Positions 4,938 to 63,480 of a DNA stretch of 64,000 nucleotides are shown here, in pieces. The DNA is from Octopus sinensis (Eukaryota). The stretch covers positions 64,368,464 to 64,432,463 of the forward strand of contig NC_043011.1 of NCBI RefSeq assembly GCF_006345805.1, in the 5' to 3' direction. The position numbers and the translations under genes were made by a program. Numbering within the stretch: the first letter of the stretch is position 1; every line of letters begins with the position of its first letter. The notes below the pieces were generated by a model. It was not told the origin of the DNA, did no database searches, and saw only the letters and a list, made by a program, of their open reading frames with translations.

Positions 4938-5738
4938 GTATTCAGTAGTTTTATTTTTATAGCGTGCTTTCACTTCACTATCGAGCGCAGCTCTGTGTGC
5001 CTTGGGTATGTGCTGTGATTTGTTGTGATGCTCTGATGGTTATTGTATAGAAAGTGTTCTGCGTAGGATGTGTGCAGTGCCTAGTAGTGCAATTTTATGT
5101 ATGTTATATGTGTTTGTAAGTCCTGGTGTTTTTGTTATGTATTTGTCTGAATATTTTTTATCATGCCTAATGCACCCACTATGATAGGAATTGTTTCTGT
5201 TTTCAGATTCCACATTCTAGTTACCTCCATTTCCACGTCTTTGTATTTTGAGAGTTTCTCCATTTCTTTTAGAGACACGTTGTCATCTGCCGGTATTGAT
5301 ACATCAATTAGAAAGCATTTTTTTTCTTCATGATCTCTGACAACTATATCTTGTCTGTTGGCCTCATTTTCTCTATCTGTGTGTATCGGCATATCCCAGA
5401 GTATGGTTGCTTTCTCGTTTTCTGTGACCTTTTCTGGTGTGTTCCTATACCATCTTTTTTCTGCTGTTATTCCATAATGTTGACATAGCTTCCAATGTAT
5501 GTAGGTTCCAACTCTGTCATGTCTGTGAATATATTCCTTCTTAGCCAGGACTGGGCAGCTAGAGATAATATGATTTATTGTTTCTTGTCCATCTCCACAT
5601 ATTCTGTAGTTACTTGTAATATTTATTTTCATTACATGTTTTTGGTAATTTCTGGTGGGGAGGCTTTGGTCTTGTGCTGCAATTAAAAATCCCTCTGTTT
5701 CTGCTTTGAGTCCTGAGCTTCTCAAGTCCTGAGCTTCT
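4938..5738 (-). mobile_element. Dong/R4-type LINE 3' fragment, subfamily 2
   Basis: ORF 5135-5725 (SGLKAETEGFLIAAQDQ, HRHDRVG, IDVSIPAD, KYKDVE); 3' end matches 55080-55180. Confidence 0.9.
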
Positions 5739-14876: not shown

Positions 14877-15177
14877 AAAGGGCTTAGTAAAATAAATTAT
14901 TTTGCCACATACTGAACTCATTAGAAATAGCAGAAAAGTTTTTTTAGCTATTTCTAATACTTAAAGAAAGTTTCTCTCAGATAGTGTTTACTCAGAATAA
15001 CCCACGAAGGGGTTATGTTTTTACCCCCATACCTTCGTGGGTTATTCTGAGTAAACACTATCTGAGAGAAACTTTCTTTAAGTATTAGAAATAGCTAAAA
15101 AAACTTTTTTGGCTGCTATTTCTAATGAGTTCAGTATGTGGCAAAGTAATTTATTTTACTAAGCCCTTTTATATAAT
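14869..15177. repeat. Fold-back hairpin, ~142-bp arms, 21-nt loop
   Basis: Arms align apart from one 4-nt indel and a few mismatches; same family as 27030-27900 and 61361-62245. Confidence 0.9.
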
Positions 15178-16169: not shown

Positions 16170-17006
16170 AAATAATTAATTGTAAATTGTGACTATACAA
16201 CAAAACAGAAACACAACGAACCAGAAATTAACAAACAAAACATAGCTTCGTCTTCGGACACACATACACGAGAATCCAAAATGGTGAGCCCCGTCGCCGT
16301 ACAGATGAATCTACATCCAACCATGAATTGGGACTCCGGTGTTATCGTAGAAGCGTTTTAGAAATTCAAACAGAAATCTCAACTAGTTTTCAAAAGTTTC
16401 CTGAAAGGCACAACTGAAGAAGAAAAAGGTAAGCTATATCCTTTTATGGACGGGAGAGGAGGGCCTAGACCTATTCAATAGCTGGGACATGTAAGAATCG
16501 GATTGCAATAACCCAGACACACTTCTAGAGAAATTTGAGAGGCACCTAGAGCACAGGTCGAACCATAGAATTCACAGATACGAATTCCAGAGCCTGAAAC
16601 AAGACCCACAAGAAACGATTGACAATTTCCTGTCAAGACTAAAGAATGTTGCCGAAAAGTGCAAATTCAAAGATACGGACGAAAGAATTGTTGACCAATT
16701 AAAATGGGGGTGTATTCATAAAGAAGTTCAGAAATCCCTCATAGGTAAAGACGCTCTCCAGTTGATAGAATCAATAGACACTGCAAGAGCATTTGAAGCC
16801 ACTACCAAACAAATGGCCTCACTTACCTTACAAACAAACTCACTAGGCAGCAGTGTAGATATTGTATCTAGGCACAGGACGAAACGCACCTGCAAACAAA
16901 AAACATGCCAGTACTGTGGTACAGCGCATGAATTCCATAACCGGAAGAAATGCCCTGCATTCGGTACACACTATAAAGTATGTGGAAAACTTAACCACTG
17001 GAAAAA

Positions 17007-20000
17007 ATGTGTAGGTTGACAAAATCCCAGAAATACAAGCTCCAATCTTCAAAGAGGAGCGGAAATAGAAGAAGAAATATATATGCACAACAAAAGGAAC
17101 AAAACACTTCAGAGGAGGAATTCGTGGCGGTCGGCACAATAAATGTACATGAGATGGGAAAGGACGACCAGAAAAAAAATGAGGCATACACAACAATAAG
17201 AATTCAAAAGAAGTCTGGCAAGAAAAGAATAAACATTGACTTAAGGCTGAAGATTGACATTGGAGCCGAGAATGATATCTTGCCTGTCAACCTTTACGAA
17301 AAGATGTTCCCAGAACACATGACACAAGAGGATAAAGTCAAAGAAGGAATCCTCACACCAAGTGATGTAATCCTCACTGCGTACGGACGGTACCAGGATT
17401 CCACAACTGGGAGGAACAAAAAACAAAAAAAAACAAAACACACAGGGACACACAAAGGAAAATAATCAAGTGTTCTTCTGTCAACCTTTACGAAAAGATG
17501 TTCCCAGAACACATGACACAAGAGGATAAAGTCAAAGAAGGAATCCTCACACCAAGTGATGTATCCTCACTGCGTACGGAGGTACCAGGATTCCACAACT
17601 GGAAAAACAACAATCAACAGGGACACACAAAGAAAAAATAATCAAGTGTTCTTTTAATGTCACAAGAACAGAGGGACCAGCAATTCTTGGACTCAATACT
17701 GCAAAAAGCTAAATATTGTGTCAATCAATGGTGAAGTGAAGGCAGCTCCAAGCAGGATTGACAGAGATATGCCTATCAAAGACCGACCACCCATCACAAA
17801 CAAAGAACTGATAAGCATGTACCCTGAATGATTTGACGATACAGTGCTTGTGGAATGTCGATACCATATAACAGTCAACCCTAATATCAAACCAATTGTT
17901 CACCCACCTCGCCGCGTCCCTCTAGACTAAAAGAAGAAGGGAGACAGAGTTGGACAGAATGGAAAAAAAAAGAAATAATCGCCAAGTGACACGACCAACA
18001 GACTGGGTAAATTCAATCGTAATCAAGGAAAACCCAATGGTACCCTACGGATATGCCTCGACCCAAGGGACCTGAACAAGGCATTAAAAGAGAGTACCAT
18101 CCATTCCAACCCTTGAAGAAATCACACCATCATTGGCTGGGTCCAAATTATTCAGCAAACTGGATGCCAGTAATGGGTACTGGAATGTAAAGATAGACGA
18201 AGAGTCATCCATGCTCACTACCTTCAACACACCATTTGGCAGATATCGATTCAACCGACTCCCATTTGGATTGAAGGTGAGCCAAGATGTTTTCCAGCGC
18301 CAAATAGATGAGACCTACCAAGGCTGCAAGGGAGCAATTGGAATAGCAGAAGACATCCAAGTGCATGGCAAGGATGAGACCACACATGACTTCAATTTAC
18401 ATGAAGCTATGCAGAAAACCCGACAAGCAGGCATCAAACTCAATGCAAACAAGTGTGTGATAAAAGCAAAGAAGTGCAAATTCTTTGGAATTATATACTC
18501 TGCAGAGGGATTTAAACCAGACCCCGCTAAATTGGAAGCCCTTAGAGACATTAAAGAACCTAAAGACGAGAAGGAACTCAGGAGCTTCCTGGGACTCATC
18601 CACTACATGGGAGCCTTCATACCCAAGCTGGCTGATCACACTGCAAATCTCCGAGAACTAAACAAAGATGACGTAGAGTTTGATTGGTGTGCTTCACGCA
18701 CACAGGATTTCGAAGCGATCAAAAAGCTCATCAGTAAGGAGACAACTCTGCAATAGTATGACAGACGCAAACCAATAATACTCCAAGTCGATGCATCTAT
18801 GAGAGGAGTTGGCGAAGCACTGATACAGGGAGGTAAACCCATTGCATATGCCTCGAAAGCTCTCTCACCCACAGAGACAAGGTACGCAAATATTGAAAGG
18901 GAACTCCTGGCAGTAGTATATGGATGTGAAAAGCTCCATACATACCTGTATGGCAGACATTTCTATATTGAAACAGACCATCGCCCGCTAGAACAAATAC
19001 ATAGAAAAAAACTCACAAAAGCACCAACTAGACTGCAAAGATTACTGTTAAGGCTTCAAATATACGACTACGATATCAGGTACAAGCCAGGAAAAGACCT
19101 GATATTGGCGGATGCTCTTTCCAGACTATCATCACGTGATAAACAGGAGATGGAAAGACTAAGCATAAAGGTCCACCACATTGTAAATGTGACAACCACA
19201 AAGCTAGCAGAAATCAAAGAGGCAACCAGCAGAGATGAAGAACTTCAGCTCCTTACTCAGATGGTGATTCAGGGGTGGCCAGAAAAGAGACATCAGGTGC
19301 AGTCCCTAATTCGTGAATATTGGGCCATCTATGATGATATATCAGTGGAGAATGGAATCCTGATGGCTGGATCCCGAATAATTATACCCAAGTCAATGAG
19401 AAAAGAGATTCTGGACAAGATCCACCCAGGGCATCTAGGAATGGAGAAATGCATGCTTCGAGCCAAGTCAGCAGTATATTGGGTAGGCATGTACAAAGAC
19501 ATAGAGAAGACAGTTTCTACATGCCACATCTGTAAAAAGTACAGAAACTCACAACAAAAAGAGGAAATGATATCTAGTGACATCCCAAGAAGGCCATGGC
19601 AAACTATTGGAGCAGATCTGTTCACAGAGGGCTAAGAATGGTATTTGATTATGGTCTGCTACAACTCAAATTTCCAATTGTGAGAAAAGTGAAGGACCTG
19701 AGAGCCCAAACAATCAATACAGTTGCTCGAGGACTTCTAGCAGACCAAGGAATACCAGAGCAGATCATCTGTGGCAATGGAACCCAGTTCACATCGCAAG
19801 AATTCAAAAAGCTAGCCGATGAGTATGGGTTCAATATTACAACCTCATCTCCACACTACCCGAAAGGTCATGGGTTTATAGAAAGACAGGTGCAGACAGT
19901 GAAGAGAACACTAGTCAAATGCCGAGAGACTAAGGAAGACCCACACCTGGCACTTCTGTCCCTACGAGCAACACCACTGAGAGCTGATATGAAATCCCCA

Positions 20001-20318
20001 GCAGAATTGCTGAATGGCAGGAAGTACAAAACTACCCTGCCAAGTAAGATTCAACCTCCTATTGACCAGGAAGAGACAAGGGCAAAGTCAGCAGCCACTC
20101 AAGAACATTCACAGAAATGTTACAACAAACATGCACAATACTTACCTGAGATACTTGGAGGACAACATGTACATACTCAAGATCCCATAACTAAAACAAG
20201 GATTCCAGCACAGGTTGTCAGTAGAGCTGAAACCCCAAGATCGTATATAATAAAAACGGAATCTGGTAAGCAGCTTAGACGCAACAGGGCCCATATCCGC
20301 CCAACACTAATGGGATAG
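17007..20318 (+). pseudogene. pol: Gypsy pol (PR-RT-RH-IN), broken by stops and frameshifts
   Basis: ORFs 17007-17465, 18133-18756, 18799-19635 and 19596-20318; RT catalytic DD reads ED (IAEDI). Confidence 0.9.
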
Positions 20319-20538
20319 ACAACTCAATAAGAAGCATAGTTATTCTTTTACGTGTTTATTTACTTTTCCATGTTACACGAACTGTGCTACTTTCAGCGCA
20401 GCGACACCTATATATCGTTAGACACAGCGTAGTAATACTGTTTACTTTAAAACACAGTTCGTACTGTTCACTAACAAATAGTGCCAAAAGTGGGGATGTA
20501 CTCTACACACGTATACACATAGATATGAATGTGTAACA
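20307..20538 (-). repeat. Inverted LTR copy (232 bp)
   Basis: Reverse complement of 15906-16137 with 4 substitutions counted; lacks the last 19 bp of the LTR. Confidence 0.95.
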
Positions 20539-20622: not shown

Positions 20623-23600
20623 GTAAGAGAGTAAACCAACGATTAATATTAAACGATGTTTATGATCATGAAATCCGAAAATTGTGATGCCAGAGGTCAA
20701 TGGACTATTTCAGAGTATTCTTGAGATTAATCGACGTACTCATAATAAATTGTCCACGTTATGTCCTAAATGGATAAGGATAATATAGAGCATGTTTGTC
20801 AAGGACTTTAGATCCACATCAAAGCAGCCTTTAGAGCTAAAGGCGGGTGGATAGACTGAGCTGATGAGAAGGTTTATTGTGATCTAGCCCACAGATATTT
20901 ATCAAAATATATTTATTTGTCTTGTAATATTTTATCAGTCCCAATATGTTTGAGGCGTATTCGAACCGGTGAACAAAGTATTTACTGCATTTTTTCACGG
21001 AAGATATATCCCGTTTGTTGACAAATGGCGTGTATACACCTACATTCGCCGGTTCAAATGTGTCTCAAGCATATTCAGGCTGACAATGACGTCACAGGTT
21101 TACCCATTACTGCTTAGCGCTCACCGTCAGGAATCTACTTTTCTATGCATTGCACTTGTTTTATTAAATTACCAAGTATGCCCACAGGTATCTCTTGCGT
21201 TCCGTAGATATGTAAATGTTTTGACCTGTTCATAGTTAGCTGAGCAAGAGTGCATGTTGTGTGTATACTCATATATTTGTTTCGATCAGCACGAATATAT
21301 CAACATGTTTTAATTATTCAGTTTTAATGATATGTTCTGTTTTGATACTGGTAATTATGTAAAAAAAAAAACTCTTAATCATTGGCTGTCTCCTATATTT
21401 ACTTTTAAATCATTCCATCTGATTGAAACCTCAATATGTTAATTACTGTTGTATTTATTACATGAAAATAGGTTCTCGTTTACGAAAAATATGCATTCAT
21501 AACATATTCGACTAATTAAGACAAAGGATTCTGTGACACTGATGTTTGGACTTGACACTGATGTCTGTCGGCAGCTTTCCTCTAAGCAATCAGAATACTC
21601 ATTTAGATAATTAAACCAATAGCAAGCACGCATACAGAATGCTTGTATTTTGATAGTTTGAGGGTATGCTGCTCTTATAGGCATAAGAGAGTATATTCTC
21701 TTAGTGCGATTGGTGTTAAAACACCCGTGAGTCATAGACAAGCGAGATAACTCGCGACAGATCCTATTCAAGAGCGATAGACATCGATGTTTCGTAAATT
21801 TTGTGACTCGATTTTCCATCAGGCGCATGAAGAGGACCTAATCTCTTAAGCATATTTGATATAGTTAAAACTTGTCAAATAAAAAAAGATGTAAATTAAA
21901 CCATAAAATGAAAGATGAACACATGTTAGCATATATAATTAAATATAGCAAATATGTATCTTCACTTATTTAAGGCCAGCACCTGTTACACTATATTACT
22001 TAAGACGAAGTTAGTTGACGGTAAATTTATTTTACTACTTGAACGATTTGTTACGGATAACCAAGATGAAATATTCCATATTCATTTCATTTCTCATTTT
22101 CAGTAAGTTTCGATTACTGCATATAAACGTCTCACCTGTATAGCTAAGTGGAAATCTCTGTTTATTGTTATCTCTTATTCTGATTCTCGTTAGGACGGCA
22201 TTTATGCATGTAAGTGTATACATACACATACAAATAAACACACATCTATTGATGTGAATGTTTCTCTGTGTGTCAATGAATACAAAGGTTACAACACTGA
22301 TGCTTAAAATTTGACCTTTAAAAATACATTATTGCATTCAATTTCCATGCGCAGTGCCTGTTTTCTGTTATGACACAACATCCAGTAATATCTTCTTAAC
22401 GGGTTTGGTGCACAAAAGCCATATGAAAAAACACACACACACATACATACGCGCGCGCGAACAAACAAATGTATATATGCGTGTGTATGTGTGAGCGTTT
22501 GTGTGCCAATGTATATGCGTGTGTTTCTTCCTTTGCATTCTACCTCTTGTCAATCGATATTAGTTTACCTGTACGTAGCTCTCCATTAAAGGATCCAATT
22601 GAATAAATATTTGCCTTAAAATAACACTTAAGGTGCACTAGTATGTCTGTAGGCCAACGACTGAAGAAAGTAATAATAAAACGATAGATGGGTCTTCTTT
22701 ATATCTATGTATAAGCGTGCATATAAAGGGTTCAAACTCTCTTTGTATACTATCTCTCACAACATGCACAAACGCGCTCAACGCTATAAACTTATGTAAA
22801 AACAATGCCATACATGCAGACTTTGCAATATGCGTTTAAATTATATAAATCACTGACTCACATTTATATAAATACAAATACTAAATCTATTTCATTATGC
22901 AAAAACTATCATCGAAAAAGTGAAGTGTACCCAAGCAAAAAATCGGACTATAAAACAGCAATAATGCAAAAAAGCAAAAATGACACCCTAGTACGTAATT
23001 ACTCTCTGGAATTGGCATACTTTGACGAGCTGCTCTATTTTGCTACTAAAATATGCATTAATATTAAGCGTTATTGGTTATAAGAATTAAGGTCTCCACG
23101 CAACATTAATACAATTGAAGATGGGTCATTTAAAATATATCGTTTTTGGATTTGGTTTCGAAGATTCTTTATATAGGTTCGTGTGTTGAAGCATATTCTC
23201 TTGTGTCTAGGGAGAGTCATTTTCTTTTTGTTTTATAATTTGATTTGTATTATAATTTAACACAATCACCGGTAAAATTTCCACTTATTTCTTATTTTTA
23301 TTTTGCTAAAATGTTCGTTGTGTCTTGCAACATTTTCACGCGAGAAGTAGTCAAAACTGCCTTTTGAAGGCAGTTTTCTCTTTTGTTTAAATATACACTA
23401 TTTTATATTTGAGAATATATTGTCTATTGACATTTTATATATGTTGGACCACTGGACATGAATTTTCAAAAAGAAAAAATTCACTACTATATATATATTT
23501 TACGTAAATGTTTTTAGCAATATTTAAAAGATTAGTTCGGCAGTCATTCATTTACTCCCGACTGATACTGCCCTTGCGCGGCGAATTTTTAAAATTATAA

Positions 23601-24309: not shown

Positions 24310-24520
24310 ACCCTTTTCGGTCATGAATGACTATGGAATTGCACCGAGAAAGTCACCCTCCCAGGCACAAGTCCGGGCAAGCTTGTTTGTGGAAGGCCAG
24401 GAGTCGTCCATGCATGCCAGCCTCACCTCTCCTCACCACTGATGTTATCCATTTAAAGCATAATACAGAAACTTGTTTGAACATGGTTCGGTTAACGTCG
24501 CGCATGTGTGGTAACACACA
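24310..24520 (-). mobile_element. SINE-like repeat (family of 14460-14800)
   Basis: Shared CCTCCCAGGCACAAGTCCGGGCAAG core. Confidence 0.6.
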
Positions 24521-24703
24521 CAATATATAACACATTAAACGAAGGTATTTTAAAATCCAATAATTTTTACATATACACGAATCAGTTCAGGAATACAGTA
24601 AATGTACAGAATTTATTTAGGACAGTATCAACTGCCTCAACATATTTATCTGTAATATTTATTTATTTTACTTATATAAAATATCTTTCGTTTTAATTTA
24701 TAG

Positions 24704-24806
24704 AATTTGTACTAGCAGCAGACCATTGTACAGAAATAGCCAAAGAATCTTGCCACGATGCAATGAAAGCATATCCTCATTTATCAAATAATTCTGACTA
24801 CTGCAG
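24704..24806 (+). CDS. Gene A exon 2 (xFVLAADHCTEIAKESCHDAMKAYPHLSNNSDYC)
   Basis: Acceptor TTTTAATTTATAG, donor CAG|GTACGT, open phase 1 to 2, Cys-rich. Confidence 0.75.
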
Positions 24807-25148
24807 GTACGTTTCATCGATATATACATTACAGTAGCAAATAATGGTCTTATGGCAGAAAATGTATAACACCATATTATGTAATCTATCTCAGCATATT
24901 AGCATTTTAAATTTACATTTTTATTTCCTAACACATTTATAAATTAAAATTGACAAATGCATAACTTGAGCTCCGGTTCTTTTTGTTGATTTCTTTCGCT
25001 ATATTCAAAGAAAATATTTCTATTTTAGTAAGTTTATAAAAAATATACTAATAACAAAGAAGCAAATGTTACATTGACAATATTAATAGAAATGAGAAAT
25101 GAAACGTACCTGCAGTAGTCAGAATTATTTGCTAAATGAGGATATGCT
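24768..25148. repeat. Inverted repeat 24768-24817 / 25099-25148
   Basis: 49/50 identity to the reverse complement; the left arm spans the exon 2 end and its splice donor. Confidence 0.95.
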
Positions 25149-25291
25149 GTTACGTAACACTGAAATGGTTTAACATTACGATTGAGGCAACGAAAATGTC
25201 ATGGCCTGCCACAATATACAAATAATCCAAGATAATGAAACATATAACTACTTCGTTAAAATGACTTTACCCTTTGTATGCTCACTTTCAG

Positions 25292-25380
25292 ACGCTTACG
25301 AATGTTTGAAGCATGTTTTCAAGAAACCCACAGCAACTGCAGCTTTTATTTTGCAATCATCTATCACCATCTGTGCAGTG
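25292..25380 (+). CDS. Gene A exon 3 (RRLRMFEACFQETHSNCSFYFAIIYHHLCS)
   Basis: Acceptor CTCACTTTCAG, donor GTG|GTAAGA, open phase 2 to 1; homologous to 56500-56684. Confidence 0.8.
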
Positions 25381-26769: not shown

Positions 26770-26834
26770 TATATATATATCAGAAATATTAATTTTAAAT
26801 CTCTTAGAGATATGTAAGGAGGTGGGGCGATAGA

Positions 26835-26988
26835 ATGGTTGTATACTGTCAATCTAACGTGAACGTGACAGTAGCGGGTTACACCACTGTTTAGCCCTAG
26901 GAAGCATCGTCGATGTTCCTAGGGCTAAACAGCTGTAATGTATCCCCCCATACTGTCACGTTCACGTAGATTGACAGTATACAACCAT
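26835..26988. repeat. Imperfect fold-back hairpin
   Basis: ATGGTTGTATACTGTCAATCT...AGATTGACAGTATACAACCAT plus an inner CTGTTTAGCCCTAGGAA/TTCCTAGGGCTAAACAG stem. Confidence 0.85.
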
Positions 26989-27029
26989 ATATATATATAT
27001 AGATATATATATATAAACAAATAGGGACA

Positions 27030-34051: not shown

Positions 34052-34219
34052 TCAGCGACTGATACCATGATTAGAGACTCCCAACCTATCGCTTCAAAGT
34101 CTCTGCTGCAACTGATTCGTTTCCCGCCGGTGTTATGATTTCGGCGGGAAACGAATCAGTTGCAGCAGAGATTTCGAAGCGATGGGTTGGGAGTCTCTAA
34201 TCATGGTATCAGTCGCTGA
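34052..34219. repeat. Fold-back hairpin, 78-bp arms, 12-nt loop
   Basis: 3 mismatches counted. Confidence 0.95.
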
Positions 34220-43030: not shown

Positions 43031-44400
43031 ACTTTAATTAATATATAGTTAGCATGTTCTTTAGACTTAGTATACCTTTATTAAATACCATTAATTGCCA
43101 ATGATCAATCTTTATAGATTCCATCTAATAAGTCAAGATTTAAGCATATAAAATAAATAAATATTAAACTATTTCTACGTAATTGTTTTCCTCAATCTAT
43201 TGTGGTAAATTTTGGTATATACTAAAAAGTATTCAAGCATTTTATCCTTTTATTTATAATATTCTTCTTAAATAATCTTGATAACCCTCAATTTTTTTAA
43301 TTTACACAATATAGCTATATAGTTTTAAAGTATTCAACTATAGTTCCCCATGATAATATTTCCCCTGGTTTTACTACAGTCTCGCTCATTTAATTGATAA
43401 CGAAATATTTTCCTTTACCAAATCTCATTATATTTCTTCAAAGTAATCTTGACTATTGTATGACTATACCCACTATGATTTCTGTCAACTCCCTCAGCCC
43501 CTTTCCTAACAGAAACTGCTCCGTTTTCCTTTGCTTTAGATTTCGATATACAAAGATTTGATATACAAATCTATAAATTAAAACTGACTACAAAAAACAG
43601 TGACAAGATAGATCCCTAACAAGACCTTTTTTTCCTGATAACTTGATAGCTTTTAAGCCGAAGTGAAGACAGAATGATCTTTGTCGCTCTCCTTTCCTTC
43701 TTGGAGGTTTTAGTTAAAGTTATCCTAATGTGTCCATCTGTTTTAATTTAACTTAATTCTATGTACTTTTGCAGCAGAGGATTGCTCTGCATTTAAATGG
43801 ATGTAATGGTTGCATTGTTCACTTAAATGGAGTGGCTTCAATCGATTGTATTGCATTATCACTGGATATCCGGTTGCTTATTTTGATTTCAATAACCTTA
43901 CATTGGAACTCTATGGATAAAACCGTATTAAACTGTAAAAATGTGGCGCAGGTTCCTACCCGACATCCGAATCTCGGAGTTTTATCATGGGTACCGAATA
44001 ATTGATAATTGTCACAAATTACAAACACATATATAAATAGTCTGTGTATTGATATATGTGTGCTGCGAAAGAAAGGCCTTTCATTTAGATTTTAATAGAT
44101 GGATGAAGAGCATTCGATGTTGTCCACTGCCATAAAGTTTCAACGCCAGAGAATACAAAGGCAAAACTAGAATATGTGGATATTTCTATTGAAACATAGT
44201 GCGCAAAAATACCACTTACTAATATTTAATTACAATGTATTTAAGTACCTCTTTCTTTCCCGAAAACACATAGTAAAAAAAAAAATTTTGTTTTTAATAG
44301 ACGAAGGATACATGACACGTCAGGTGAGGTTGTATGTATCTAAAGTGCTTTAAAATTAAAATCTTAACAGTTGCCAATGTGTTTGACACGAATAACAACG

Positions 44401-44440
44401 ATGAAATATGTTCTACTTCTTCTTATGATTCACCTGCAAG
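44401..44440 (+). CDS. Gene B signal-peptide exon (MKYVLLLLMIHLQ)
   Basis: ATG, hydrophobic core, donor AAG|GTAAGT in phase 1, upstream acceptor TTAACAG at 44370; loosely similar to 20574-20622. Confidence 0.55.
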
Positions 44441-45650: not shown

Positions 45651-45774
45651 GACCACTATCGCTGTGAAAATATCATCCATCCATGAATTTATATATTTAA
45701 TAATTTCGAAAGAAGGAAAAACATAATGATAATAATTAAAAAGTAATAATATTATAGTAAATATAACAATATAT

Positions 45775-46022
45775 ATATTATATAGAGGGCATTATTACAC
45801 ATAAATGCCTCACACTAAGAGGGACATAAGTCATTTCTACCAAAAATGTCACTAATCATACCCAATGCAGTTTTTCAAAGCAAGACATTTAAAAAATGAA
45901 TTTTTTAAATGTCTTGCTTTGAAAAACTGCATTGGGCATGATTAGTGAAATTTTTGGTAGAAATGACTTATGTCCCTCTTAGTGTGAGGCATTTAGGTGT
46001 AATAATGCCCTTTATATAATAT
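45775..46022. repeat. Fold-back hairpin, ~122-bp arms, 4-nt loop
   Basis: About 4 mismatches; loop TGAA at 45897-45900. Confidence 0.95.
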
Positions 46023-46141
46023 AAATTAATATGTTCAAAAGAAAAATATTTTTTCGAATTTTTTCTCTTATGAATTTTTTCACGCTATCTACCTCATAAT
46101 TTCTTGTTAAGATTCCTTATTAAGAAGTTATCCTTAATTGT

Positions 46142-46212: not shown

Positions 46213-47876
46213 TGTTGCGGCCAAAATGTTCAGAACGGCATTGTTTTCGTCAGAAAGGTAAGTATAAATTTTGTCAAAGTGGTTTTGAACTTGCATAGAA
46301 AACCACCACAATCAGACTATAGTTTTATATTCTATAATTTTCACAGGCAATAAATACAATATTAATTGTTAGTGTCTGAGATTTGGGTGTAATTTCAGAG
46401 GATAATACAAAAGTTATGGATGATTTAGTGATTTACTGCAAAACACATTACGGCCAAAATGATCAGAACGGTTAAAAAAATAACAAAATAATAAAAAATG
46501 ACAGAGAATACTGAATTTATTTAATATTTAGTGTGAAGCCCTTTAGCTTCAATCACACTCTGACATCTTCGACTGCACGAGAAAATTAAATTTTCAATTT
46601 CTTGCTGGGTGATCTTATCCCATTTTTCCTGAAGGGCATTCCATAATTGCTCATTTGTTTTAGGATTTCTGGCTTTCGAACGTTCTCCTAGAATATTCCA
46701 TACATTTTCAATAGGATTGAGATCTGGGCTTTGAGCAGGCCAATCCATAACCTCTTCAGCCTTGAGGAAGTCCATGACCGCCCTAGCCTTGTGATATGGG
46801 GCATTGTCCTGCATGAATATGGGTGGTCGCTTAGTTGAATTCCTCAGCACAGGCAAGACATGATCTTTTACAAGTTGTTTATAAACTCCTGCATTTAACT
46901 TTCCATGTAATCGCACCAAAGGGCCCACACCATCTCCAGATATCATTCCCCAAACCATGACACTTCCTCCACCGAATTTAACACTAGCCTTAAGGCATTT
47001 AGGCAACAAGTTTTCACCTACTTTTCTACGAACGTACCTTTTCCCATCTGAGCCAAATAACATAAACTTAGATTCATCACTGAAATGCACCGTTTGCCAT
47101 TTTTCTTGAGACCACAACACATGTTCGGTTGCAAAGGTAAGACGACACTTTTTTTATTCTTGGAGTTGATCAGTGGCTTCACTGCATGTGCTCTTGCTGG
47201 TAGGTCATGTTCAACTAAACGATGAGACACAGTTTTTCGAGATAAAGCTTTCTTCAATACAATGCTCATTCTCCGAGAAACAGCAGCTGCAGTTTTAAAT
47301 CTGTCCTTTTTAACCAACTTTACCATAGCACCATCTTCTATCTTGTGTCGTTTTTCTTGGTCTACCTGTAAACGTCTTGCTTCACACGAACCACAATCAT
47401 CGTAGAGCTTAAGAATACCGTGAACAACACTTTTTGACTTGTTAACAATCTTTGCAATAGATCCAATACTTAAATTATCCTTCCTTCAAAGCTTAATAAT
47501 CTGCTGACGAATTGGTAACGGAGTAAGTGGCATTATATTAACAAAGTACACTGCAAATATTCTTACTAATGTTTAGTAAACGAACCGTCACGTAAACAAA
47601 TTCAAAACATTAGAGTTCGCCGATTAAATATACTAACACACGGAGTAAAAGTAACCGTTCTGAAAATTTTGGCCGCCATGGGTTTTGCAGTAAATCACTA
47701 AATCATCTATAAGTTTTGTATTATCCTCTCACATTACACCAAGATCTCAGGCAATAACAAATAATATCGTATTTATTGTCTGTGAAAATTACAGAATATA
47801 AAACAACTTTGATAAAAAAAATATATCTATCTTACTGACGAAAACAATGCCGTTCTGAATATTTTGGCCGCCACTT
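46212..47876 (-). mobile_element. Tc1-family transposon, full length, IR/DR-type long TIRs, TA-flanked
   Basis: TIRs ~265 bp with the GGCCAAAAT..TCAGAACGG motif at outer and inner ends; transposase 46521-47533 with FSDESKF, QDNAPYH, SPDLNPIE; stop and frameshift present. Confidence 0.95.
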
Positions 47877-48349: not shown

Positions 48350-49900
48350 CTAGGGGTAATTGAAGGGAACGGAATAAGGCATTCAGAGATGAAGGCATGG
48401 ATCAGGAGAGAATGCTATCGAAGAGTGAGAGCAATACTCAAGACAGAGCTAAATGCAAGAAACAGGATCGAAGCAATCAATGCATTAGCTATACCAGTCG
48501 TGACTTACAGTTTCAATATTGTTAATTGGTCAATTACTGAAATATGTCAGCTCGACAGAAAAATAAGGAAACTGTTGACAATGCATAGAATGCACCACCC
48601 TAAGGCAGATACAGAACGACTCTATCTGCCAAGAAAAGAGGGAGGGCGTGGTCTTTTGCAACTGGCAATAACAATGAAGATTGCTACAATTGGCCTAGAC
48701 ACCTACCTGAAAAGCTCTGAGGACTGGATGTTAAAACTTGTCTCAAAACATGAAAACAAGAAAGCATCATACTCAGTCACAAAACAATATCTAAGTGAAT
48801 TCCGAATACAACCAATTTCGGAATTAGAGATAGATATACAAGAAACAAGCACAGAAAAAGCTAGGCGCATGAAAACCCGTGCCAAAACTGCGGCCTTAGA
48901 TATTCTGAATAATAAATGGCAAGAAAAACCTCTCTATGGCAAATACCCAAAGAGAGCGAATAATGCAGGTATCGACAAAGCCCTGACCCACCAATGGCTA
49001 ATGGCCTCTGGCTTAAAATCTGAAACAGAGGGGTTTATCATAGCAGCTCAAGATCAATGCCTACCAACAAGAAACTACCAGGCCAACATATTAAAGATCA
49101 GAAGCAGTCCAACGTGTCGTGTATGCAAGCAACAAAATGAAACCATTGACCATGTGGTCTCCAAGTGCAGTCTTCTAGCGCCTACAGAGTATCTCAACAA
49201 GAACGATAGAGCTGCACAATATATTCACTGGGTAATCTGTAAAAATCGGATTTGCCCCATGAAAAAAACTGGTGGGAACACAAACCACCCCCAGTGCTTG
49301 AAAATGACCACATCTCACTCCTCTGGAACTTCACCATTCAAACTGACAGGAAGATAGATGCAAATAGGCCAGACATCATATTGAAAGACTTCAAACAAAG
49401 AACATGCCTCCTCATTGATATGACTGTCCCAATCGATATAAACGTATCTGTCAAAACCTACCAAAAACTGAGCAAATATAAAAATCTTGAAATAGAAATC
49501 AGCAAAATGTGGAAGCTGAAGACTAAAACAATACCTGTTGTCATAGGTGCCCTGGGAATGATAGCAAAAGGAGCTGATAGTTACCTAACTCAGATACCAG
49601 GAAACCCAGAAATGGCAGAAGTTCAAAAGATAGTGCTCATGGGAACTGCTCATATCCTACGCAAAATACTCTCTATGTAATCTCAAGGTTTAAAACAAAC
49701 ATAATTTTCGGTCTAAAAAAAAAAAAAAAAAATTTTTTTTTTAGACATTCATTAGTACAACATCCCCACCCCCCAAATATATGGCACACTAGGCATAACA
49801 ACAACATGAACTTCCAACACTGTTGTCTCTTGTGGTCTCTGGGTGAGACTTGGAGCCAACTTGTACAAACATAAAGCAAAAGTCAAACATAAAATAATAA
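48350..49900 (+). mobile_element. Dong/R4-type LINE, 5'-truncated, subfamily 1
   Basis: ORFs 48389-49357 and 49252-49680; (TAA)n on both sides. Confidence 0.92.
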
Positions 49901-50372
49901 TAATAATAATAATAAAAACAACAACATCGAAAACTACATTAGGAATGAGAAAACAAGTGTATATCAGCCGAAATGTTGTGTTAATAATAAACAAGATGCG
50001 GACAAATATCCGTCAAATATAAAAAATGAAATTTATAGAAGTGATACTGAGATATGTGAATAATGAATGACAAAAATGTTTTTCGATTTCAAGGTTATGA
50101 AGCAGCAGAGTACTGCTATGAAGCAGCGATAAAACTTTGTCCTCATTCTATGCAAAATTATCCTATAAGTAGGCCGGATCGTCACTATTGCGAGTAAATA
50201 TGCTTGTTTTCAACGTTTATTTCTAATATTTTTGTCCATAAATTTCTAATGAATGATATTTGAATGTTTCCTATATGTTGTCACATGATGCGTATCTCTT
50301 TATATCATTTATGCATATATATGTGTGTGCGTGTGTGTATGTATGTATACAGAGAGAGATATAGATATATAT

Positions 50373-56499: not shown

Positions 56500-56684
56500 T
56501 CGATTAAAAGCTTTCGAGGGTTGTTATACGAGGAGACAATCTGCGTGTGCGAAAGAGTACAGTCTATTATCGCGCAATCACATTTTGAATTTAATTGAAT
56601 TATCTGCGTTCTTGGTTTGTTACGAGACCATGGAGTCCGCGTGTGCTGCAACAATCAGACAAATTGCGTACAAACGACTCTGTG
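56500..56684 (+). CDS. Gene B exon 3 (61 open codons; RLKAFEGCYTRRQSAC...FLVCYETMESACAATIRQIAYKRLC)
   Basis: Acceptor TTTTTCTTTTAG, donor TGTG|GTATGA, phases 2 to 1 as in gene A exon 3; conserved RL..FE.C and Y...C motifs. Confidence 0.75.
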
Positions 56685-58831: not shown

Positions 58832-58837
<6 letters not shown>

Positions 58838-59152
58838 GTTATCGCCATACTAATATGGTATTCTTATAAAAATAAGAATAAACCTGTCCGCTTATTAGCT
58901 CCACGAGGCCATCGCCTTAAGTTAGCTATTTGATACACAAACTGTATCCATATAACCTTCGAACAAGGGAGGTCAGTCGCTCACACTACTTGATCGACAG
59001 CTACAGACGCGTTTCGGGGTATTGCCCCTTTATATGGATACAGTTTGTGTATCAAATAGCTAACTTAGGCGATGGCCTCATGGAGCTAATAAGCGGACAG
59101 CTTTATTCTTATTTTTATAAGAATGCCATATTAGTATGGCGATAACTATTAT
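58832..59152. repeat. Fold-back hairpin, ~124-bp arms, 74-nt loop holding a half hammerhead
   Basis: Arms align with few mismatches; the loop on the minus strand reads GGGGCAATACCCC-GAAAC-GC-GTC. Confidence 0.9.
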
Positions 59153-61363: not shown

Positions 61364-62240
61364 GAGGGTAAAATTAATTAATTATTAATCAATTTCACCA
61401 AGTATTCAGTATGTAAAGGGACCATTTAAGGCGAATTCAAATTATTACATTATATAAAAGGGCTTAGTAAAATAAATTACTTTGCCACATACTGAACTCA
61501 TTAGAAATAGTAGCTAAAAAAACTTTTATAAAACTATTTCTAATACTTAAAGAAAATCTCTCTCATATAGTATTTGCTGAACTCAACTCACGAAAGTATG
61601 GGGTAAAGACATTAAAAAATCAAATGCAAAGGTTATTTGAGAACGTATGTTTCAAGATTAGTCAACACGACATTTTTATCATCAGCTCAGAACTCCTTGG
61701 TTTGGATTTGAAAACACTGAAAGTGGGAGCATACCCTTTCGCTTCTTATCGCTTCTGAAGATCTGCTCGAATCTAACAGTGCCAGCAAACCCAAAATATG
61801 CAAGCGAAGAATTTCTGCTCTCCCCTTTCCACCAGCGTGGGTTAAAATCAGCAAACACTATGCTTTTTCGGTAAAATCAGAAGCATTAAATAGAGAGAGA
61901 TGAATTATAATTTCAACAATTGAGGGTAAAATTAATTAATTATTAATCAATTTCACCAAGTATTCAGTATGTAAAGGGACCATTTAAGGCGAATTCAAAT
62001 TATTACAATATATAAAAGGGCTTAGTAAAATAAATTACTTTGCCACATACTGAACTCATTAGAAATAGTAGCTAAAAAAACTTTTTTAAAACTATTTCTA
62101 ACACTATATGAGCAAAACTATATGAGAGAGATTTTCTTTAAGTATTAGAAATAGTTTAAAAAAAGTTTTTTTAGCTACTATTTCTAATGAGCTCAGTATG
62201 TGGCAAAGTAATTTATTTTACTAAGCCCTTTTATATAATG

Positions 62241-62245
<5 letters not shown>
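61361..62245 (-). mobile_element. Non-autonomous Penelope-like tandem and inverted repeat, hammerhead motif at 61639-61688
   Basis: Direct repeat with 560-bp period (61361/61921), terminal inversion ~62130-62245; sits inside a (TA)n tract that is empty in copy 1. Confidence 0.7.
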
Positions 62246-63372: not shown

Positions 63373-63480
63373 ATCTCTTATATATAAAAAATAAGAAAAT
63401 GGAGAAATACACCTTAATCAATAATCAACTACCAGAAAAGGTGTATTTCTCCATTTTCTTATTTTTTATATATAAGAGAT
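63373..63480. repeat. Perfect hairpin, 43-bp arms, 22-nt loop
   Basis: 43/43 match. Confidence 0.95.

Follow-up and report, generated by a model that had tools for sequence, protein, structure and literature searches.

The window analysed here is a stretch of 64,000 nucleotides of Octopus sinensis DNA, and it contains a predicted gene, hereafter called gene A, whose second intron carries an inverted copy of the end of the preceding exon (Table 1). Exons 1, 2, and 3 of gene A splice into the open frame MKYSIFISFLIFKFVLAADHCTEIAKESCHDAMKAYPHLSNNSDYCRRLRMFEACFQETHSNCSFYFAIIYHHLCS, every splice site is canonical, and the peptide spliced from exons 2 and 3 corresponds to one copy of a six-cysteine domain known from Octopus proteins. 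The start of exon 1, MKYSI, matches P0020 of O. bimaculoides, and the layout matches P0018 on L001, one of the loci of the same family. Gene A is a real gene and, judged from its sequence, apparently intact. The exon/intron boundary is supported by homology, both by the annotated O. vulgaris entry CAI9735826, which has an intron at the same codon position as intron 2 of gene A, and by the paralogous half-domain exons detectable in five Octopus loci, all of which (31/31) break at profile position 27/28. The conserved motif D-x-YC/xRL spans the predicted exon 2/exon 3 junction.

Table 1. Predicted exons of gene A, the segments of the putative templated patch in its second intron, and the second domain copy (positions within the window; a slash in a splice site marks the exon/intron boundary)
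Feature	Positions	Strand	Remarks
Gene A exon 1, coding part	22066..22102	+	MKYSIFISFLIF + 1 nt; donor TCA/GTAAGT; first part of signal peptide
Putative template of the 15-nt copy	22085..22099	+	TTTCATTTCTCATTT, within exon 1
Gene A exon 2	24704..24806	+	103 nt; enters in phase 1, leaves in phase 2; first half of 6-Cys domain
Left arm, putative template	24768..24817	+	last 39 nt of exon 2 (codons K-AYPHLSNNSDYC-R) and first 11 nt of intron 2 (GTACGTTTCAT)
Gene A intron 2	24807..25291	+	485 nt; contains the loop and the putative templated patch
Loop	24818..25098		within intron 2
Exon 1 segment copy	25090..25104	-	exact 15-nt reverse complement of exon 1 bases 22085-22099
Right arm	25099..25148	-	49/50 reverse-complement copy of 24768-24817, within intron 2
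Palindrome	25148..25159		perfect, 12 nt, TGTTACGTAACA; abuts right arm with 1-nt overlap
Gene A exon 3	25292..25380	+	89 nt; ends in phase 1; second domain half (RRLRMFEAC...HHLCS)
Second domain copy, first half	50094..50193	+	phase-compatible with exon 3; join gives ...HHLCSGYEAAEYC...
Second domain copy, second half	56500..56684	+	same intron position (after YC + 2 nt)

The 3' extent of gene A can be drawn in two ways. Further downstream in the window lies a second copy of the domain, whose split and phases equal those of gene A, and the sequence that arises when exon 3 is joined to the exon at 50094 resembles the inter-domain linker KKCSGDAKSQFC of CAI9735841. Gene A may thus extend to at least 56.7 kb, the exon at 50094 being one of its later exons. 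Alternatively, the second domain may belong to a separate tandem paralogue that starts at 44401 and has the exon at 50094 as its exon 2. A possible first exon encoding a signal peptide, MKYVLLLLMIHLQ, is seen on the plus strand at 44401-44440, with the donor AAG/GTAAGT and a phase compatible with 50094.

Two other candidate exons were rejected for gene A. An open reading frame at 24327-24508 was dropped as exon 1, since it matches repeated-element frames of O. bimaculoides and 22066-22102 fits the family better. The frame of 67 amino acids at this place (24327-24530, plus strand, in intron 1) is 46-62% identical to “uncharacterized proteins” of O. bimaculoides, such as A0A0L8HSB2, and proteins of this type look like translations of dispersed repeats that have been annotated as proteins. 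A hydrophobic terminal exon at 43650-43745 (plus strand) is phase-incompatible with exon 3. This frame is preceded by a good acceptor and ends, before its stop codon, in a tail (…DRMIFVALLSFLEVLVKVILMCPSVLI) like the C-terminal tails of the family; it may be a relic or serve an isoform as terminal exon.

A family of six-cysteine domain repeats in Octopus

The module encoded by 24704-24806 and 25292-25380 is about 55 amino acids long and contains six cysteines in the pattern C-x8-C-x6-YP-x5-D-x-YC-xRL-x5-C-x7-C-x11-C. In a HMMER scan of 1.84 billion representative proteins, it was found one to eight times per protein in uncharacterised proteins with 28-40% identity to gene A, and all of these homologues come from O. 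bimaculoides, O. vulgaris, or O. sinensis. Gene A keeps all of the domain invariants (C1, C9, P17, C26, R28, C35, C43, and C55). The same scan contained neither the protein of gene A itself nor a close orthologue, and word-indexed searches with the exon 2 plus exon 3 peptide, with a 99-aa intronic frame, and with an alignment of gene A and the second domain returned no homologue.

Members of the family consist of a signal peptide, one to eight tandem helical domains of 55 amino acids with six cysteines, and often a hydrophobic C-terminal tail; in the window they are unannotated. For the comparison we used five loci with members of the family (L001-L005), located on O. vulgaris OX597831.1 (15.36-17.16 Mb) and O. 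bimaculoides CM046618.1 (49.6-49.9 Mb), which together comprise 233 kb and hold paralogues of gene A only; at the DNA level, they match the window only in transposons. Both in these loci and in the window, two exons always encode each domain, and the position of the intron between them is fixed. The genes are clustered in tandem, and the cluster measures about 1.8 Mb. We treat the family as Octopus-expanded secreted proteins. This Octopus-specific family of six-cysteine domain repeats, with its fixed two-exon module, was previously uncharacterised and is defined here.

The domain is possibly RGM-N-like. Gene A scores 18-19 bits against Pfam RGM_N (PF06535), for which the gathering threshold is 24.2, and 14 of the 24 family domains match RGM_N weakly. 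When the family profile was compared with the sequences in the PDB, the N-terminal domains of RGMB and RGMC were the only matches (E 0.008). Like the RGM N-terminal domain, the family domain is a cysteine-rich helical module with the motif D-x-x-[YF]C-x-x-L-x-x-[YF]-x-x-C-x(6,7)-C; unlike RGM, it occurs in one to eight tandem repeats, lacks the C-terminal/GDPH part, and scores below the Pfam threshold. The AlphaFold model of the domain is a small helical bundle (pLDDT 96), with which Foldseek gave no significant fold match in the PDB and did not recover RGM. As for a canonical RGM gene, the window contains no GDPH motif and no RGM_C-like exon.

An inverted, composite copy of exon sequences within intron 2

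A repeat finder and direct reading both identify the segments 24768-24817 and 25099-25148 as reverse complements of each other, identical at 49 of 50 positions and separated by 281 nt. The only mismatch is at 24784, where the left arm has T and the reverse complement of the right arm has G. The flanking sequences are dissimilar beyond both ends of the arms, so that the limits of the repeat are sharp. The left arm includes the 5' splice site CAG/GTACGT. In the whole window, the 50-mer was found at the two arm positions only, even with up to three mismatches allowed, and none of 100 dinucleotide-preserving shuffles yielded any match to it, which excludes chance. The 233 kb of paralogous Octopus loci likewise contain no further copy of the patch or arm sequence.

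The first-pass annotation of this DNA, made from the letters alone, had described a 49/50 reverse-complement copy at a distance of 281 nt within an intron of 485 nt, had divided it into 39 exonic and 11 intronic nucleotides (CAG/GTACGTTTCAT), and had called it unique sequence rather than a transposon. The repeat finder returned exactly the same coordinates, the division and the intron length are both correct, and the uniqueness holds throughout the window and the 233 kb of paralogous loci. The six-cysteine homologues and the fixed intron position also bear out its reading of the left arm as the true end of an exon, with its 5' splice site, in a real gene.

The right arm is not the only copied segment in intron 2. 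Adjoining its 5' side is an exact reverse complement of 15 nt of exon 1, and the last 6 nt of this copy (ATGAAA, 25099-25104) are common to both segments and form a microhomology junction. In other words, 25090-25148 consists of the reverse complement of an exon 1 fragment, 6 nt of microhomology, and the reverse complement of the exon 2 end with its donor. The 15-mer TTTCATTTCTCATTT occurs twice in the window when either strand is considered (128 kb in both strands), once as the template and once as the copy, and no other exact match between intron 2 and the window exceeds 12 nt. Among 5000 shuffled introns, two reach 15 nt against exon 1. Against the exon 1 segment, its support comprises only 9 unique and 6 shared nucleotides, and these are AT-rich. 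The perfect palindrome of 12 nt that follows the right arm may have arisen in the same event of replication or repair.

Among the paralogues compared, the copy is confined to gene A. None of the 31 paralogous half-domain exons in the five comparison loci from O. vulgaris and O. bimaculoides (233 kb, paralogues only) has a reverse-complement copy of itself within 3 kb, and the second domain copy in the window is likewise without one.

Which of the two arms is ancestral can be judged from the coding sequence. The left arm is a conserved coding exon end in a domain with all of its invariants, and its intron position is identical in the 31 paralogous exons; it is therefore taken as the ancestral copy, and the right arm as the derived one. 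The right arm is probably one segment of a short composite templated insertion that covers 25090-25148 and perhaps extends to 25159, an insertion recognised by its pattern alone. We favour, with moderate confidence, a recent event of template switching in which the two exons of gene A served as templates for this insertion and a duplex between the exon and the donor-containing intron arose incidentally. Both templates, in exon 1 and at the end of exon 2, lie upstream of the patch and on the same strand, which would fit an iterative snap-back of a nascent or resected 3' end. While the plus strand was being synthesised or repaired, its 3' end would have folded back onto a stretch farther upstream in that strand and, after copying 15 nt from exon 1, jumped at the 6-nt microhomology (ATGAAA/TTTCAT); it would then have copied 50 nt across the exon 2/intron 2 boundary before returning to the original template. 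Such an event would belong to the class of intra-strand template switching or snap-back synthesis, either of the replication-linked TSM/MMBIR kind or of the polymerase-theta kind. The event looks recent, given a single difference in 50 nt, and in this respect the first-pass annotation, which had called the element recently arisen, agrees with the 49/50 identity; the difference at 24784 may itself be a copying error.

Several features of the patch have counterparts in published systems. Templated insertions by MMBIR are recognised by an insert that lies near its template, is inverted relative to it, and is flanked by microhomologies (PMC8421209), and the 3-2-1-4 class of template switches in the four-point model yields inverted repeats (PMC5453318). 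It has also been pointed out that a perfect stem can come from one template-switch event (PMC8794818). Like template-switch (four-point) events and insertions of the MMBIR or polymerase-theta type, the patch copies nearby sequence in reverse complement, its ends are sharp, and it has a microhomology junction, namely the 6-nt overlap between its segments; at its outer junctions, microhomology is limited to the 1-nt overlap with the palindrome. Unlike the published template-switch events, the gene A copy is 50 nt long and its templates are 281 nt and 3 kb away. For comparison, one screen considered short fragments (10 bp or more) whose switch points were no farther than about 30 bp from a mutation cluster (PMC5453318), and a screen for templated insertions considered templates within 100 bp of the insertion (PMC8421209).

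Two other origins have to be weighed against template switching. The first is that the patch is an artefact of sequencing or assembly, that is, a chimeric or fold-back read that entered the consensus, or else that it represents a somatic variant or a rare haplotype. Long-read data are known to contain small inverted duplications as a class of artefact, and the patch is seen in a single assembly. On the other hand, it is internal, short, and composite, contains microhomology, has one template 3 kb away, and differs from its template at one base. Its composite microhomology structure and the one-base difference resemble a biological templated insertion rather than the fold-back of a read, and we regard an artefact or a rare variant as highly unlikely. 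The second is that a small transposon or foldback element has the arms as its terminal inverted repeats, or that the arms form a small-RNA precursor of the hpRNA or miRNA type. Foldback hairpins and elements with terminal inverted repeats do fill the window, but the left arm is the end of a conserved coding exon, the arm sequence is present in only two copies in the window and absent from the 233 kb of paralogous loci, and the flanks of the arms show no target-site duplication. For lack of multiple copies and of a target-site duplication, and with the left arm being a host exon, the identification of the arms as the ends of a transposon or MITE was rejected. As to a small-RNA precursor, Rfam has no match in the window, and a loop of 281 nt is unlike that of a miRNA hairpin. 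Taken as a whole, this second origin is extremely improbable.

The predicted pre-mRNA duplex and other hairpins of the window

When exon 2, intron 2, and exon 3 are folded together, the arms are paired with each other in both the minimum-energy and the centroid structures (z = -6.6), with a predicted duplex energy of -80.1 kcal/mol and a mean arm-arm pairing probability of 0.97. The predicted pre-mRNA helix has 50 bp with one U.C mismatch and encloses the whole 5' splice site together with the AYPHLSNNSDYC codons. In a survey of metazoan editomes, reverse-complement alignments of at least 50 nt with at least 80% identity within 2 kb were considered to be potential intramolecular dsRNA (PMC9989829), and the arms of gene A have such a length, identity, and distance. 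According to the homology-backed gene model, the intronic arm lies in the same transcript as the exon end with which it would pair, again with a probability of 0.97. Because a pairing of this type would form in the pre-mRNA, any editing must precede splicing.

The exonic part of the helix contains 13 adenosines, and the editing of nine of them would be nonsynonymous. The predicted recodings are Y>C, H>R, N>D/S (in two codons), D>G, Y>C, and R>G. ADAR prefers certain neighbouring bases, and when the adenosines are ranked by this preference, those with the best context are UAU at 24773 and UAC at 24800, which belong to the conserved tyrosines of “YP” and “YC” and whose editing would produce cysteine. 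In a module with three disulfides, a change from tyrosine to cysteine at these positions looks harmful rather than adaptive. In a near-perfect duplex of 50 bp, editing is expected at many sites and not at a single one. Should transcription of gene A coincide with ADAR activity, one would expect from the modelled structure that A-to-I editing affects both arms promiscuously, that the exon 2 donor is used more slowly, or both.

The duplex could be a functional editing-complementary sequence (ECS): by pairing with the end of the exon, the intronic arm would allow ADAR to recode particular gene A codons prior to splicing, and selection would keep the element. The geometry of the exon–intron duplex is that of classical ECSs; as in the intronic ECSs of GRIA2 (Q/R site, exon 11-intron 11) and of Drosophila Syt1, a segment of the downstream intron pairs with the end of the preceding exon. 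The lineage is also suggestive, octopods being cephalopods, in which recoding by editing is extensive (PMC5705066, PMC9989829), and the duplex offers the 13 exonic adenosines mentioned above, nine of them nonsynonymous if edited. Classical ECSs, by comparison, are conserved and imperfect duplexes that direct site-selective editing (in part PMC5705066, in part general knowledge), whereas the gene A duplex is young and near-perfect, is specific to one species and one gene, includes the donor itself, and is known from sequence alone. Its pairing is confined to gene A among the paralogues, of which 31 exons lack the copy, and at its age it has no record of conservation. Its near-perfect 50 bp would favour promiscuous over site-selective editing, the best-placed edits at 24773 and 24800 would introduce cysteines into a disulfide-bonded domain, and the protein collections searched contain neither a protein derived from a gene A transcript nor an orthologue. 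A selected ECS is, in our judgment, decidedly unlikely.

The term “ECS-like”, used in the first-pass annotation, deserves a divided answer. The repeat, the exon end, the octopod lineage, the recency, and the duplex, which had been expected to form between exon and intron in the pre-mRNA and is very stable in the prediction (-80.1 kcal/mol, pairing probability 0.97), all stand; an adaptive role is physically plausible, but the lack of the copy in the paralogues and the predicted damage to the conserved tyrosines speak somewhat against it. The term describes what the gene A element could work like in the modelled transcript. A parallel to the promiscuous editing expected of the duplex is offered by pairs of inverted repeats, for example inverted Alus, which are substrates of hyper-editing: in both cases, a long near-perfect intramolecular dsRNA is expected to be edited at many adenosines. 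Unlike inverted Alus, the gene A duplex is made of unique gene sequence, has one coding arm, and is much shorter.

The same helix could also act on splicing. As a regulator, it would hide the exon 2 donor from U1 snRNP, so that exon 2 is included less often or intron 2 is retained, and would thereby tune the output of gene A; skipping of the 103 nt of exon 2 would lead to a frameshift. At equilibrium, the donor positions -3 to +6 are paired with a predicted probability of 1.0 in the presence of the right arm versus 0.60 without it, that is, the whole 5' splice site lies within a stable predicted helix. Its loop of 281 nt, however, leaves the donor exposed while the loop is being transcribed, and this kinetic competition may blunt the masking. 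In the classic hairpin experiments of Eperon, hairpins with long loops reportedly often lost to co-transcriptional recognition of the donor. The pairing is, moreover, not conserved among the paralogues. Stems that sequester a donor are known, for example in MAPT exon 10 and in SMN2 exon 7 (TSL2), where the 5' splice site likewise lies in a helix that competes with U1 snRNP (PMC11802352). Those are short local hairpins with small loops, unlike the 50-bp helix over a 281-nt loop in gene A, for which the kinetics may favour splicing; in the “window of opportunity” view, too, long-loop hairpins would often lose to co-transcriptional recognition of the donor (PMC11802352). We consider a regulatory role in splicing quite unlikely.

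A further reading combines origin and effect, namely that an ECS has been caught at its birth: a single composite insertion would have made a duplex that already drives ADAR editing of conserved residues and is coupled to the use of the exon 2 donor. This is an unlikely reading. Most likely, the patch is a young mutational by-product with a latent capacity for ADAR editing or donor occlusion. It is most probably selectively neutral or mildly harmful rather than an evolved regulator, neutrality being a default assumption here; a helix of 50 bp across a splice donor may well be of consequence where editing is as heavy as in this lineage.

The origins of exon-complementary editing structures and of helices that mask splice sites can rarely be observed, because the examples known so far are conserved and of old age. 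For miRNAs and rRNA, it has been proposed that template switching produces perfect stems in one step (PMC8794818); in the literature searched, no paper connects template switching to editing-complementary sequences. If an ECS had indeed been caught at its birth, gene A would reveal a de novo route to exon–intron editing duplexes in a lineage that relies on recoding, and if the patch, the empty site, and editing were all confirmed, it would be a clean natural example, from a cephalopod, of the template-switch route to an ECS. Otherwise, it would simply join the other neutral templated insertions, and its main use would be that of a mutational footprint seen at good resolution.

The window also contains near-perfect foldback hairpins at 14901-15145, 26826-26990, 34052-34219, 45771-46026, 58832-59152, 61443-62245, and 63373-63480. 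They have arms of 30-130 nt and short loops and are foldback palindromes or members of repeat families, not copies of gene sequence; one repeat family includes those at 14.9 kb and 61.4-62.2 kb, and the others are single in the window. By origin, they may be foldback elements or palindromes made by template switching. A Ty3/Gypsy-type pol region on the plus strand at 16800-20320 extends over several open reading frames (RVT_1, RT_RNaseH, Integrase_H2C2, and rve), and a Tc1/mariner-like element at 46322-47804 has terminal inverted repeats of 153 nt (89% complementary) and a DDE_3 transposase frame on the minus strand (46521-47120). LINE-like frames with a zf-RVT domain are found at 4939-5725 and 48389-49680, and the first of these copies is 96% identical over 788 nt to O. 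vulgaris OX597831.1 (L001).
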